Below the pieces are notes generated by a model. It saw nothing but the letters and a program-made list of their open reading frames with translations, made no database searches and was not told the origin of the DNA. Made by a program: the position numbers and the translations under genes. A DNA stretch of 64,000 nucleotides from Octopus bimaculoides (lineage: Eukaryota), in assembly GCF_001194135.2 (NCBI RefSeq), contig NC_068986.1:106635429-106699428 (forward strand). Reading direction: 5' to 3'. Of the stretch, positions 7,509 through 53,068 are shown piece after piece. Position 1 is the stretch's first letter; each line of letters starts with the position of its first letter.

Positions 7509-7640
7509 TCTGATCATAGCGTGTCACCTTTTTAAATTCGATTGGTGGTACTCGGCAGTAAAGTGATCGACACCGAAAGTCAGTGGCACCAAACGCAAAG
7601 TAGTCTCCAGTCAAACATTGTCCTTCGGTGTCTTTACAAT
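7509..7640 (-). CDS. Copy A Cys exon 2 (CKDTEGQCLTGDYFAFGATDFRCRSLYCRVPPIEFKKVTRYDQ)
   Basis: Acceptor atttctttcag, donor A|gtatgt, 132 nt, open phase 1-1. Four Cys and both splice sites are conserved with copy B. Confidence 0.8.
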
Positions 7641-8243
7641 CTGAAAGAAATTATATATATATGTATTAGTGTAATGATCTTCATCAGATTAAAGGTGTTT
7701 TTGCTGTGGGATACAGTTCGCTCATGGTTGGTTGGTTGGTTGTGTATCGCCCTATAGCTTCGTGAGATATTCAAAAATGTTGTGCAATTGTATTTGTGAA
7801 GTAATGTTTTTTCATATATACAAATGAAATTCGTCTAAAAGAACCTCTTATGTATATGTATATATTTCCCCTCATGGGACGATGTCCACCATAATCTATC
7901 TTGCATCTTTAGCTTTCACCTATTTTGAACTGAACATATTAGTGCAGTATGAGTGATTCTAAACCACCATCATTCCATCAGACGCTTTGCACAGTTATCA
8001 ACTCTGAAAAACAAGGTTGTGCAACACTTTCTACATCTTTTCTCCTCATGGAAACTTAATCCGCTTACATCCATCATTAATAATCGATGTGCTAGAAAAC
8101 TTTACGAAAGATTAATATATTTTCACTAATAAATGTTGAAAATGCTACAAGGACGAAGTTTAATTGCTGCTAACTTAAATTACATTATTCATTAAATATG
8201 CAAGCATTCACACAGAAAAATAAAACCAATAGCTAACTCGTCT

Positions 8244-8760
8244 CTTTACTCTTTTACTCTTTTACTTGTTTCAGTCATTTGATTGTGGCCATGCTGGAGC
8301 ACCGCCTTTAGTCGAGCAAATCGACCCCAGAACTTATTCTTTGTAAGCCTAGTACTTATTCTATCGGTCTCTTTTGCCGAACGGCTAAGTTACTGGGACG
8401 TGAACATACCAGCATCGGTTGTCAAGCAATTTTGGGGGGACAAACACAGATACACAAACATATACACACACACACACACACACACACACACACACACACA
8501 CACACACACANNNNNNNNNNNNNNNNNNNNNNNNNNNNNNNNNNNNNNNNNNNNNNNNNNNNNNNNNNNNNNNNATATATATATATATATATATATATAT
8601 ACGATGGGCTTCTTTCAGTTTCCATCTGCCAAATCTACTCACAAGGCTTTGGTCGGCCCGAGGCTATAGTAGAAGACACTTGCCCAAGGTGCCACGCAGT
8701 GGGACTGAACCGGGAACCATGTGGTTCGTAAGCAAGCTACTTACCACTCAGCCACTCCTC
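8244..8760 (-). mobile_element. SINE family 1, inserted in a copy A intron
   Basis: Full head and tail. The empty site aactcgtctgataag is intact in copy B at about 33405. Confidence 0.9.
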
Positions 8761-8817
8761 TACGTCTGATAAGAAAAATATGAAGAAAGTTTATCTTTGT
8801 TACACCTTTTTACTTAC

Positions 8818-8943
8818 AGCTCACCATAATGTTCGTTATTGGGTTGAGACATGATATTTCGTTACAATGCTCCAATGATGGGTTTATACGCCTACCCTTT
8901 TCACTACAGAAGCAACTTACTTCATCGTTACATCCGTTACAAC
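8818..8943 (-). CDS. Copy A Cys exon 1 (GCNGCNDEVSCFCSEKGRRINPSLEHCNEISCLNPITNIMVS)
   Basis: Acceptor ttttcttttacag, donor T|gtaagt, 126 nt, open in phase 1-1. The six Cys (C-x2-C-x5-C-x-C-x13-C-x4-C) are identical in copy B. Confidence 0.85.
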
Positions 8944-9716
8944 CTGTAAAAGAAAATACGTTTATGAAGACTAAAAACAAAAGACATGCTATTTCGCTGT
9001 TTGACGGGGGGGGNNNNNNNNNNTTAGTGGTTGATCTGGTTTAGTATGAATGCTGCGTGAATCAAATTCCTTCAATTATGATATTTGATTGGTAGGTCTT
9101 AGTAAGTGTCGTATTCGTGTGAATGACGAAAGCGCGCATGAGCAGAGGCCAGCAGAGGCCAGCAGAGCAGCCAATACTGACTCCTTGTTGTCTTTGTTGA
9201 TAATCAAGAGACCGATAAGAAACTGATGCGGCTTTGAGGATTAACGGTGACGGCTGATTAGCCAACGATATCTAGAAAAGCGTGATAATTAATTTACTGT
9301 GAAATATCGATGAAATTAGTATTTAGTTGACAAATATTACACTTTAAACTTTTCGACTATATCAATATGTTGTGAGTGATATTTTATTGTATTTTCCTTT
9401 GAATTTCATTCATTTTCTTTAAATATTTCTTATCAAGATGTAGTAAAGACACAAAAGAATGATGATTATTGTTTTAATTAAGAATGTTTATGTTAATTAC
9501 ACTTCTTGATTTTCTTTTACAAATTTACATACTGGGGTTCAATAAGTTAAAAAAATTCCTTCAAAGGTTTGATGATATAAGACGTTTACCGACCTGTACT
9601 CAAGAAATTTCATGGATATGATGAAAAATAACTTTGCATGCTGCATGGAAAGAAGCCATGGAGGCTTTTAATGGGGAAATATATCAGATGAAAACTTAAG
9701 GAATATTGAAGCTTAC

Positions 9717-49700: not shown

Positions 49701-51149
49701 TTACTATTAGCGTTTAACACTAATTGTTGACCGATACATAACTCGACAGATAACAAAGGAAATGTAGAAAATTAGGACAAAAGCATATCAAATCATTTGG
49801 CGATGGGAACGAAGTTCTAATTAGGAAATTCCATCTAGGAACATATAATCCAATATATTACTTAATTGAGATAGAAGGGAGTTATTTTACTTGAATATTG
49901 GTTGTAATTCTAGCTAGTGAACATGGCGTTGTGAATGAATGATTCACTAAAATACTGAAACTTCACATTCATGGAATCATAATTTCACATCCCCAGTCAG
50001 TACCTACTATTACGAGATTCCATACTAATTGAGCTTCCACGTTTTACAATTTCACCTATGTGTTGCTAATGGACTTATGCAAGTGTCAATGATGTTTTAA
50101 TTTTGTTAATGAACAAAACCTGTAACCCTTTGTTTAAACAACAGTATAATTAGTATTTTCATAAATGTTGTTTCTTTTTTCTTTTTACTATTGTCAATCT
50201 TTCATATGTAGGAGATATTTCTGCCGCACCCTGCATATATATATATATATATATATATATATAACTTTGCCCGTAAATAGGTGAATGTAATCCTGAAAAT
50301 TGTAAGCTTATAAGAAAGTATTATCGGACGTCGAAACATAATTGGGGCATCAGAAAGAAAATCATAAATTATGATATTTGAATAATGAGAATAATGAAAA
50401 TAGATAAAATGCATGATCAGATGCATTTGTAATCACAAAACCAATTAAATGAAACAGTATCCTTATATCCTTATACATACATAATTTTACAGATGTTTCC
50501 TCTTAGTGGGGAGGCTTTGCTAATTCATTATTACGTAGTGCCAATGCAGCATTAAGTTCTAGTTTTCAATGTCCTATATAAGAAGGAAGATAGAAGTATT
50601 TGCTTATAAATTCAAGTCATGATTTTGCTCACTCGAATAATCATTATTGAAGTGAAACAATAAATTCTCTACTGGTCTTTCCACATATATCTGGAGATGG
50701 AAAGGAGTCTTGTGACAGCATGTTTTATATATCTTGGTTTATACTTGCTTTTGTATATTCATTATCACAATATGGTAGCAAGGAAAATGAACAAAAATGT
50801 CATCTTACCAACGAGTAAAGTTTTATGATCAATAAAACGAGCATGCTGCATAAAGAACTCATAATCTTTAAAACGCAATGACTACTCCATAAATTGCGGA
50901 AATAGATAGATAAATGACGACTGTCATAGAAAAACTTTCGCACTCTCTCAATATATAGCTTTCATTTTCGATTTTCTTTTTTATGTTTCATTTTCATTCA
51001 GAATGCTTCGTACTTGTTATTATGTTATATACTTTGCTCTAATTTTCTGAATGGAAATGTTTGAGACCCGTTTAATGGTAAACACGTTCCTACTATGCAT
51101 ACTAATAACATTTTCTTTTCCTTTCATATCTCATTGCTTTTTCTTTCTT

Positions 51150-51560
51150 TAATAAAGGAGCTGTCGAGTGGTACCCACACGATGGAAAGCGTTCAATCGG
51201 AAGACCTCCACACAGGTGATATGATTCAAAAAAAATGTTCGGTACAACGTAGAGGAGAATGGTGTGAGAACGATGGGAATGGAGCGAATGCTGTGCGAGT
51301 GGAGCCGACGCGGCACGAGACATTCTGGCCTATCTAGTTGATCCAGGTGAAGTAAATATATTTAACCGTAATCACAAACCTGGTGACACCTCCTCCATAG
51401 AGTACAGAGGTATCATTACATTCTCCAGGTGGATTTCCGTGCGCAACCAACTGAGACTATGAATATTTTACAATCATCTCGTTTTTTTATCTACCCCGAG
51501 GTTTCCTGCAGGTTGCCGCCTTAAAGCATACGTTCCCTGAGTCTTTCCTATGTCATTCTA
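51150..51560. mobile_element. Two RTE-clade LINE 3' relics (+ at 51150-51340, - at about 51400-51560)
   Basis: Plus strand reads EWYPHDGKRSIGRPPHR(W to stop)YD, the RTE W.P....R..GRP..RW.D motif. Minus strand reads GYTVRMT*ERL, resembling GH..RM...RL. Confidence 0.6.
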
Positions 51561-52100
51561 ACCGTATATCCAAAGTACTGGTGCTATGCTGACTCTTATT
51601 GCGAAGTAACTGCTCGACCTGGAGAGATGCTTCGATTAAATAGCCTTAAAAGGTAACCTGGCAGTAAAGTAATGATAAATTTGAGATTTATTCTTATGGA
51701 GTAGTAATTTTTATTTCAAACCTAACTGTTAATCAGTTGCTAACTATTTTCCCTCATTGGACGATGTCCGCCATAATCTATTTTGGATCTGACGCTTTGT
51801 ACAATTTTAAATTCTGATAAACAAATTTCTGGAAAAAGTTTCTACATCTGTTCTCCTCAATATATTAATACACTTACATCTATGATTAATACTCTACGTG
51901 CTAGAATAGTTTACGAAACGCAGTTAATATATTTTCACTAATAAATGTAGAAAATGCTACAAGAACGAACGTAAAAGCTGATAACTTAAATAACCTTATT
52001 CAATAAATATGTAAGTATTCACACATAAAGACAAAGCCAATAGTTAACTCATCTGCTATGAAAAATAGGAAGAAAGTATATATTAATTACTATTCCTTAC

Positions 52101-52223
52101 AGGTTCTCAGCGTTTTCGTTACTGAGGTGATACGAGTTATTTCTTTATAACCATCCAATAAACCTGTATGTGTATTCTGATCGCTACAAAAGCAACTTGA
52201 ATGATTGTAACCTACGTGACAAT
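52101..52223 (-). CDS. Copy D Cys exon 1 variant (DCHVGYNHSSCFCSDQNTHTGLLDGYKEITRITSVTKTLRT)
   Basis: Acceptor catttcctttacag, donor T|gtaagg, 123 nt (in-frame one-codon deletion), no stop. Three of six Cys are replaced (TGT to GGT, TAT, CGT). No exon 2 homolog before the unit boundary near 51560. Confidence 0.65.
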
Positions 52224-52998
52224 CTGTAAAGGAAATGCAAGTATTAACGCTAAAAAAGACAAGTTATTTTTCTGTTTGACGGGTTGGATCAGTGATTTAG
52301 TTTATGTGGATTAGTAAAAATTCTTCTCGAACTAAATTCCTTCAACTATTAGATTTGATTGCTAGGTCTTAATAAGTGTCGTAATCGTGTGAATGACGAA
52401 AGCGCTCATGAGCAGAAGCCAATACAGCAGTCAATATTGACACCTTGTTATCTTGGTTGCTAACCAAGGGACTGATAAGAAGCTGAAGCGACTTTGTGTA
52501 TTAAGGGCGCCGGATGATTAGCGAACGGCATCTAGAAAAGCGAGATAATTAATTTCCAGTCAAATAGTGATGTAATTTGTATTTAGTAGACAAATATTTA
52601 TTGTTAAATTTTTCGACTATATCAATATGATGTTAGTAAATTTTTATAGTATTTTACTTTCAATTTCGCTTCGTATTTTCATTCATTTTCTTTAAATATT
52701 TCTTCTTAAACGTGGTAATTTCACAAAAAAATGAAGGTTATTGTCTTAATCTAGAATTTTTGTTTTGTTAATTATACTTCTTAATTTTGTCATAGAAATT
52801 TACACGAAAGGTCCAATGATATAAGACGTTTACCGACCTGTAACTAAGAGGTGTGAAATATTTCATGGTTGTGACGAAAACTTACATTGCATGCTGCATG
52901 GAAAGAAGACATGGAGGCTTTTAATGGGGTCAATTATGATCTTATACACTCATCATATTCATTATCAAAGACGAAAACTTAAGAATATTGGAGCTTAC

Positions 52999-53068
52999 CT
53001 TCTGGAGCATTCGTAACACCTTTGGGAAGGATTACAAGAAGGAATAAAGTTACCGGAAATGTATACAT
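52999..53068 (-). CDS. Copy D signal-peptide exon (MYTFPVTLFLLVILPKGVTNAPE)
   Basis: cag|ATG, G|gtaagc, 70 nt, only 4 nt different from copy B. Confidence 0.8.

Follow-up and report, generated by a model that had tools for sequence, protein, structure and literature searches.

A tandem array of intact and decayed genes for predicted secreted, twelve-cysteine proteins in Octopus bimaculoides

A stretch of 64,000 nucleotides from the Octopus bimaculoides genome (assembly GCF_001194135.2, contig NC_068986.1, positions 106,635,429 to 106,699,428 of the forward strand; referred to here as the window and numbered from its first letter) carries a tandem array of a short-exon gene for a predicted secreted, cysteine-rich protein. 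Two copies, A (LOC128248166) and B (LOC128248167), are intact and two, C and D, are decayed; all of them lie on the minus strand. An initial annotation had described the interval 7509-53068 as an array of four such copies. Tandem copies of a short-exon gene are indeed present, but they are not four equivalent genes, and they run past that interval in both directions, the 3' end of A and the 5' end of D being omitted from it. Self-comparison of the window identified the copies as segmental duplicates with 72-85% identity across several kilobases, the duplicated unit extending approximately 5 kb beyond the 5' exon on its upstream side. Because of this segmental duplication, and because 12 cysteines are invariant across 13 family members of 22-61% identity, the array pattern exceeds what chance would produce.

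The intact genes have five exons each over a length of approximately 10-12 kb, and share one plan: a TATA promoter with a 5' non-coding exon, a 70-nt signal exon that corresponds exactly to the start codon and signal peptide, two internal cysteine exons of 126 and 132 nt, and a last exon. The cysteine exons encode six and four cysteines, respectively, and the last exon two, of which one is the final residue of the protein. Splice sites in A and B are canonical throughout, and every internal exon is in phase 1-1. The spacing patterns, phase and splice sites of the two cysteine exons had been read correctly in the initial annotation, as had the signal exon, whereas the 5' non-coding and last exons had been missed; the genes encode 12 cysteines and not 10. 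The features of the two genes are as follows.

12234-12392, minus strand: gene A, TATAAAT box (12386-12392) and 5' exon; donor GAG/gtaagt, last exon base 12234
9717-9786, minus strand: gene A, signal-peptide exon; 70 nt, cag/ATG...G/gtaag, ending in phase 1
8818-8943, minus strand: gene A, cysteine exon 1; 126 nt, phase 1-1, six cysteines, C-x2-C-x5-C-x-C-x13-C-x4-C
7509-7640, minus strand: gene A, cysteine exon 2; 132 nt, phase 1-1, four cysteines, C-x6-C-x14-C-x4-C
2176-2306, minus strand: gene A, last exon; coding part 2242-2306, ICKLERENKNEKYLIYENRLEC, stop codon 2239-2241, two cysteines
36375-36526, minus strand: gene B, TATAAAT box (36520-36526) and 5' non-coding exon; donor GAG/gtaagt at 36375
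34356-34425, minus strand: gene B, signal-peptide exon; 70 nt
33473-33598, minus strand: gene B, cysteine exon 1; 126 nt, six cysteines
31477-31608, minus strand: gene B, cysteine exon 2; 132 nt, four cysteines
29374-29448, minus strand: gene B, alternative terminal exon of RefSeq isoform X1; ending in IVHTEYYGIRFIKTERASLGRWSIG and a stop codon, without the final two cysteines
24642-24709, minus strand: gene B, last coding exon; TCMVDRKFENEKYVVYSNRFEC and a stop codon, two cysteines

The spliced coding sequence of A equals RefSeq protein XP_052824995 from Met12 on, and that of B equals XP_052824997 in full; the start of spliced B quoted in the initial annotation is exact and identical to the latter. 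Since both loci are already in RefSeq, where they are labelled "uncharacterized", the gene models themselves are not new. Isoforms X1 and X3 of A use an upstream in-frame ATG in the 5' exon (MFFLALIQNSE, 12234-12266). The same ATG in B (36375-36405, minus strand) is out of frame through a 2-nt length difference, and the extension in A therefore looks accidental. Isoform X2 of A results from an internal alternative donor in cysteine exon 2 (AAG/GTGACA) and is frameshifted, and the B isoform X1 with the alternative terminal exon is probably minor. The position of the transcription start of A is one that we infer. The 3' untranslated region (UTR) of A is short, with an AATAAA at 2176-2181. The polyadenylation site of B cannot be read because an assembly gap (24278-24558) covers the position where A and C carry AATAAA; this gap begins 84 nt past the B stop codon, inside a (TA)n run in the 3' UTR of B.

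All four of the paralogous 70-nt signal exons previously placed at 9717, 34356, 46639 and 52999 were found there, beginning cag/ATG and read on the minus strand. Each has the form ctaacag/ATG.../gtaagc and encodes a hydrophobic leader with the consensus MY(T/I/S)(F/Y)...L(F)LL.ILP(K/N)GVTN(A/V)P, so that a separate leader exon starting with ATG is present in A, B, C and D. The further claim that cysteine exons follow the signal exons applies to A and B, but C has neither and D only a decayed exon 1. In a six-frame motif scan of the window each cysteine pattern was matched twice only, in A and in B. The TATAAAT-box 5' exon region occurs in four copies (12175-12426, 36320-36560, 49440-49683 and 57099-57318) with 81-87% identity among them, the promoter copies of A and B being 87% identical. 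The remains of C and D comprise the following features.

49494-49649, minus strand: copy C, promoter and 5' exon homologue; TATA box changed to TATAAAC (49640-49649), donor GAG/gtaagt intact at 49494
46639-46708, minus strand: copy C, signal exon; MYSYLATLFLLVILPKGVTNVPE, intact splice sites
44029-44096, minus strand: copy C, last exon; FCIVDRKYGNWKYVVYLNRFEC and a stop codon, two cysteines, acceptor intact, AATAAA at 43962-43967
57138-57283, minus strand: copy D, promoter and 5' exon homologue; TATAAAT kept (57277-57283), donor GC instead of GT (57138/gcaagt)
52999-53068, minus strand: copy D, signal exon; MYTFPVTLFLLVILPKGVTNAPE, intact splice sites
52101-52223, minus strand: copy D, decayed cysteine exon 1; 123 nt, open, AG/GT kept, DCHVGYNHSSCFCSDQNTHTGLLDGYKEITRITSVTKTLRT

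Between the signal exon and the last exon of C neither cysteine exon is present, and the intervening 2.5 kb consist of unrelated sequence and a SINE-like repeat. In D, cysteine exon 1 retains three of six cysteines while its nearest counterpart in O. vulgaris (79423-79542 of the analysed locus L003) retains all six, and no exon 2 was found in the window. Neither copy has a protein model. We read C and D as decaying copies within a birth-and-death array, both of which retain promoter and 5' exon homologues. Scanning both strands revealed no further family exons elsewhere in the window, and no long open reading frame (ORF) occurs on either strand. A 16-residue tblastn match at 45571-45618 (E 0.074) was considered as the lost cysteine exon of C; it is without exon features and was judged to be a chance match. 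Intron 1 of D also contains a full-length match to U6 spliceosomal RNA (55116-55222, minus strand; Rfam RF00026, score 52.7 bits, gathering score 44, E 2e-10). Its modest score points to a retro-copy or pseudogene derived from U6 and not to a working gene.

As all internal exons are in phase 1-1, any combination of exons stays in frame, and the four signal exons might serve as alternative first coding exons comparable to those of protocadherin or UGT1A genes, with C and D functioning through splicing to downstream exons. The D signal exon, D exon 1 and C last exon would together encode 86 residues, and the C signal and last exons a 45-residue precursor of a disulfide-looped peptide of approximately 22-25 residues, both translating without stops; the signal exons of C and D and exon 1 of D are open and keep AG/GT, and the last exon of C has its AATAAA. 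However, A and B each own a complete private exon set and promoter, whereas the TATA box of C is mutated and the donor of the D 5' exon is GC. Exon 1 of D, moreover, is left with an odd number of cysteines after the loss of three that its O. vulgaris counterpart keeps, and no protein bearing the C or D leader was among the candidates of a search of 5.8 billion proteins, despite long exact words in common with the query. Such exon sharing appears improbable, and we retain the reading of C and D as decaying copies.

To define the wider family, a HMMER profile of A and B was searched against 1.84 billion representative proteins, which yielded 11 matching proteins; two further members came from a profile search of 5.8 billion proteins. 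In the databases searched, relatives occur only in O. bimaculoides, O. vulgaris and O. sinensis, in line with the lineage-specific family proposed in the initial annotation. They are labelled "uncharacterized" or "hypothetical", with the exception of LOC106872966, which carries the automatic UniProt name "UPAR/Ly6 domain-containing protein". At least nine further O. bimaculoides loci lie on the same 117-Mb chromosome record. The named paralogs (LOC128248169, -170, -177, -178, -081, LOC106872966, LOC106869804 and LOC106869794), each an "uncharacterized protein", have their architecture in common with A and B, and the near-consecutive numbers LOC128248166, -167, -169, -170, -177 and -178 suggest, by numbering only, a larger cluster.

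In an alignment of the 13 members, with 22-61% identity to B, the 12 cysteines are the only invariant columns, followed by the near-invariant D69, G72 and G83. The resulting framework is C-x2-C-x5-C-x-C-x12/13-C-x4-C-x11-C-x6-C-x14-C-x4-C-x(12-17)-C-x(19-24)-C, with the last cysteine at the C-terminus. A and B conform to this framework but C, with two cysteines, and D, with three in its sole cysteine exon, do not.

The syntenic ortholog of A in O. vulgaris (locus L002), in a sequence free of N, has coding exons of 70, 126, 132 and 68 nt, an intact ORF of 131 codons with 12 of 12 cysteines, and an intron 4 of approximately 870 bp. A, B and this ortholog thus share a pattern of four coding exons, the internal ones measuring 126 and 132 nt and lying in phase 1-1. 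The O. vulgaris array (OX597819.1, 123.44-123.66 Mb) contains the A ortholog and at least two copies with leader, cysteine exon 1, cysteine exon 2 and last exons, and a further paralog is located at 22.6 Mb. Outside shared repeats, the L003 locus resembles the window at paralog level (72-88%). Two predicted O. vulgaris proteins, CAI9724926 (97 residues; L002 19563-24334) and CAI9724927 (313 residues over a span of 98 kb; L003 78582-108628), skip intact signal and cysteine-2 exons and have unrelated N-termini added; they are probably annotation errors and not real variants without exon 2. L003 also contains, at 30299-30388 on the minus strand, a homologue of cysteine exon 2 from another subfamily (CKDFRGNCMSHGKGWIGVYRNLCVKKYCYV), like LOC128248081 and LOC128248169. 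It lies on the opposite strand, approximately 50 kb away from the remaining O. vulgaris copies; subfamilies and orientations are mixed in the cluster.

The literature searched by locus, protein and UniProt identifiers of family members yielded no paper, and broader queries about cysteine-rich or venom proteins of octopus yielded nothing relevant. An exact-protein look-up returned no spliced transcript contigs, only genome assemblies or nothing being matched.

The rate of evolution was assessed by comparing gene A with its O. vulgaris ortholog, using Fisher tests against a non-coding reference, as listed here.

Flanking introns, promoter and intergenic DNA (reference): 711 of 6959 aligned sites differ, 89.8% identity, Jukes-Cantor distance ~0.11
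Signal exon: 7 of 70 differ, 90.0% identity, p 1
Cysteine exon 1: 28 of 126 differ, 77.8% identity, p 8.9e-05
Cysteine exon 2: 23 of 132 differ, 82.6% identity, p 0.013
Last exon, coding part: 15 of 68 differ, 77.9% identity, p 0.0039
Three mature-peptide exons pooled: 66 of 323 differ, 79.6% identity, p = 1.5e-7

Between these two species the mature-peptide exons of gene A diverge approximately twice as fast as neighbouring non-coding DNA, and the signal exon, at 90% identity, lies at the neutral level (84% between paralogs). Amino-acid identity is 64%, with dN 0.206, dS 0.244 and a ratio of 0.84, while all 12 cysteines, the splice sites and the exon lengths are unchanged. Between the paralogs A and B, exons are 74-84% and introns 77-80% identical, dN/dS is 0.68, and again all 12 cysteines are kept. 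The contrast between exons and introns suggests positive selection on the mature exons.

Ratios of 0.68-0.84, a conservation of exons between paralogs that does not exceed that of introns, and the clearly decaying neighbours C and D would also be expected if A and B were transcribed but functionless young ORFs in decay, open by chance, whose fast exons reflect relaxed constraint. Relaxed constraint, however, predicts an intron-like rate and not twice that rate. ORF length, exon sizes, splice sites and the 12 cysteines are kept in both species and in 13 paralogs down to 22% identity, and at least nine O. bimaculoides loci have the same architecture; we consider a lack of function very unlikely. 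A conserved leader, a fixed cysteine scaffold and fast mature exons form the pattern known from conopeptides and snake toxins. The octopus family evolves in the manner of toxin, antimicrobial or gamete-recognition peptide families, in which a conserved leader and a fixed cysteine framework are combined with rapidly changing mature exons.

The products are predicted to be soluble and secreted, as they combine a leader with the lack of a membrane segment and an end at the last cysteine. A hydrophobic core lies at the N-terminus of each of the 13 members (Kyte-Doolittle 11-residue maximum 1.9-3.1), their mature parts contain no membrane-like segment (19-residue maximum of at most 1.4), and all terminate at the last cysteine without a hydrophobic tail, which argues against a glycosylphosphatidylinositol (GPI) signal. 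Of the earlier description as a secreted or surface protein, the first part agrees with the leader found in all members, but a surface location is unlikely. A precursor of approximately 131 residues would enter the endoplasmic reticulum and lose its leader; six disulfides would then form, and a soluble, presumably beta-rich protein of approximately 108 residues would leave the cell without a membrane anchor.

Comparison with described families by sequence and profile was negative throughout. Neither A, B nor any of the 11 members tested matched a Pfam family at E up to 10, including EGF, VWC, Kazal, pacifastin, CS-alpha-beta defensin, LU (Ly6/uPAR), snake toxin and fn1 (fibronectin type I, FN1); only sub-threshold noise was recorded (zf-CW 0.25, Tryp_inh 0.16). 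This agrees with the earlier statement that the spacing fits none of the EGF, VWC, pacifastin, Kazal, Ly6 and CS-alpha-beta patterns. Neither the single proteins nor the family alignment and profile matched any sequence in the Protein Data Bank (PDB). LU and FN1 profiles, validated by what they retrieve from the PDB, were then compared with the family by hhalign; the former retrieves 97 LU and three-finger-toxin sequences and the latter fibronectin entries. AlphaFold2 gave a useless model from two sequences (pLDDT 39.7) and, from 13 sequences, a low-confidence model made up entirely of beta-hairpins (mean pLDDT 57.2, pTM 0.40, core 60-77). With the latter as query, the best Foldseek matches in the PDB were FN1 module pairs (3cal_C, 3gxe_B and 3ejh_A; E 0.014-0.05, target TM-score 0.5-0.63, approximately 88 aligned columns), none of which reaches E 0.001. 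These comparisons gave no confident match to a described family, the best Foldseek E being 0.014, and the negative Pfam, PDB, hhalign and motif comparisons leave the family unassigned.

Two of these comparisons bear on possible remote relationships. The proteins could be divergent LU proteins of the three-finger type that act like secreted SLURP/Lynx prototoxins on nicotinic-type receptors, as the UniProt/UniRef name of the paralog LOC106872966 would imply. Their N-terminal C-x2-C-x5-C resembles the start of LU domains, they are predicted to be secreted, disulfide-rich and beta-rich, and they have phase-1 introns in common with LU genes, although this feature is generic. The absence of UPAR_LY6 and snake-toxin Pfam matches speaks against such a relationship, as does the comparison with the LU profile (hhalign probability 0.04%, E 0.9). 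The CC-x(4-5)-C-N signature is missing as well, with neither a CC doublet nor a terminal C-N in any of the 13 members, and 12 cysteines in approximately 108 residues stand against 8-10 in 60-90. The top structural matches were FN1 pairs and not LU or three-finger proteins, although the model is too weak to dismiss a three-finger fold. An LU origin thus has only a slim chance of being correct.

A relationship to FN1 is somewhat less improbable, though still unlikely. The two cysteine exons could encode a pair of FN1-like (or VWC-subdomain-like) beta-hairpin modules, in a remote relative that acts as a binder of matrix or collagen type. FN1 pairs are the best Foldseek matches, and each octopus module occupies one phase 1-1 exon of approximately 42-44 residues, as in fibronectin. 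However, the model is of low confidence (mean pLDDT 57, pTM 0.40) and gave no match at E 0.001, the cysteine spacing of the family differs from the FN1 spacing C-x(24-29)-C-x-C-x(6-10)-C, and neither the fn1 and VWC entries of Pfam nor the FN1 profile (hhalign probability 0.2%) matched the family. In addition, the two exon modules are without profile similarity to one another. The idea that cysteine exons 1 and 2 arose as duplicates of one another likewise found no backing from hhalign (P 0.4-0.5). Beta-hairpins arranged as in FN1 are accordingly a weak, model-derived structural lead, and the family is best treated as unassigned.

The window is AT-rich (34.8% GC), with many TA/TG microsatellites and 24 N runs, none of which lies within a coding exon. 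The gaps in A hide no exon, since the gap-free O. vulgaris ortholog is collinear on both sides of them and has the same four coding exons. Gaps in and between the intact genes are located as follows.

11082-11255, 9014-9023 and 8511-8574: gene A, introns 1, 2 and 3, respectively
2565-3302, 4129-4768 and 6302-7176: gene A, intron 4
15436-15855, 17169-17569 and 18229-18741: intergenic
25073-25692, 27335-28026 and 31248-31397: gene B, intron 4

Intron 4 of A, which takes in 2540-7235, measures approximately 5.2 kb, of which 2.25 kb are N, compared with approximately 0.87 kb in O. vulgaris; the excess consists of repeat insertions, for example at 3303-3608. This repeat recurs at 41890-42194 and 55765-56061 and in the O. 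vulgaris loci. An ORF fragment in the same intron (4769-4987) has no Pfam match. An 11-bp minisatellite (consensus ATGGAATGGGA) at 15122-15434 and 15859-16704, with 28 and 79 copies, flanks the gap at 15436-15855; it has a strong GC skew and yields spurious ORFs of 300-580 residues with HSHSIPIPFPF repeats. A bipartite SINE-like repeat of approximately 200 and 185 bp, with 82-93% identity between copies, is present at the positions listed below.

80-284/436-683 (inverted), 6138-6301, 8241-8498/8575-8788 and 16834-17019: SINE-like repeat
32616-32830/32828-33022, 43215-43454/43583-43703 and 45037-45237/45403-45567: SINE-like repeat

Its halves flank a TA/TG microsatellite, usually an assembly gap. 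The repeat is found directly downstream of cysteine exon 1 in A and B and at the corresponding site in C; it occurs in the O. vulgaris L003 copies and is absent from the O. vulgaris A ortholog. ARAGORN detected no tRNA-like part in these repeats.

Taken together, we interpret the window as part of a birth-and-death array, found only in Octopus in the databases searched, that encodes a lineage-restricted family of secreted, disulfide-rich effectors or ligands, a reading to which we assign a probability of roughly 80%. The products would most likely act as extracellular binding effectors or ligands whose target co-evolves with them, be it in prey or predators, pathogens or gametes. Venom or salivary, immune or antimicrobial, reproductive (e.g. 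sperm attraction or gamete recognition) and endogenous-ligand roles appear roughly equally plausible.

Several observations weigh against this interpretation or temper parts of it. The dN/dS ratio of 0.84 is below 1, with a dS of 0.244 that also exceeds the intron divergence of approximately 0.11; as dS is raised and, being based on a mere 80 or so synonymous sites, imprecise, the case for positive selection is suggestive and not proven. Gene conversion among paralogs, if limited to exons, could also inflate divergence. The beta-rich fold is tentative because of the poor model (mean pLDDT 57), and the likely cleavage site VTNA/P would place an unusual proline at +1. Support for transcription of A and B is indirect, coming from RefSeq models and from ORFs and splice sites conserved across species. 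Finally, two older paralogs do not appear, by identifier, in the supplementary data of two O. vulgaris proteome studies, one on skin mucus and the other on the posterior salivary gland, which is a weak negative.

A bolder and more doubtful possibility is that the family represents a new six-disulfide fold, so far found only in Octopus and under diversifying selection, which serves as secreted weapons or recognition molecules, and for which exon loss would yield shortened variants as in C and D. Candidate functions would then include salivary or venom components, egg or oviduct sperm attractants of the Octo-SAP type, and soluble modulators of the chemotactile receptors expanded in octopus. Octo-SAP, a sperm attractant attributed to De Lisa et al. 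in 2013, is reportedly of approximately 11 kDa.

Lineage-specific gene expansions are known from cephalopod genomes, and few orphan secreted families have been defined there. A lineage-specific family of secreted cysteine-rich effectors is of a familiar kind, but this family and its cysteine framework are undescribed in the literature searched. What is new here is the recognition of an Octopus-restricted 12-cysteine family in which each module has its own exon, of a tandem birth-and-death array that includes copies with lost exons, and of an acceleration specific to the exons. Two "uncharacterized" RefSeq loci can now be placed in a family that is possibly a new disulfide-rich scaffold, and whose tandem array is common to O. 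bimaculoides and O. vulgaris. The "UPAR/Ly6 domain-containing" label of one paralog in UniProt is not reproduced by direct tests. Since such a rate pattern is, in other organisms, a mark of venom toxins, antimicrobial peptides and gamete-recognition proteins, these octopus proteins provide a candidate set for octopus venom, immunity and reproduction.

Among known systems, LU proteins such as SLURPs and snake three-finger toxins resemble the predicted octopus products in being small, secreted, disulfide-rich and, as far as the model indicates, beta-rich, and in being encoded by clustered genes; in the toxin branch of LU proteins, exons evolve faster than introns. The octopus proteins differ in having 12 instead of 8-10 cysteines, a longer mature part and no CC-x4-C-N. 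FN1 pairs (3cal, 3gxe, 3ejh and 2cg6) share with the family a module of approximately 42-45 residues per phase 1-1 exon, each FN1 module of the fibronectin gene being one such exon, and, according to the low-confidence model, small stacked beta-hairpins held by disulfides. They differ in cysteine number and spacing and show no profile similarity, and FN1 modules are known from chordates. The closest parallel in mode of evolution is with conotoxin-type peptides and the MgCRP-I family of mussels, the latter being an analogous example (PMC4558851). These systems likewise combine a conserved signal exon, fast mature exons and fixed cysteines with lineage restriction and tandem birth and death, but have no sequence relationship to the octopus family. 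The predicted mature octopus protein, with approximately 108 residues and six disulfides, is also larger than conotoxin-type peptides of 10-40 residues with 2-4 disulfides, has no evident pro-region, and is split over three phase-1 exons.

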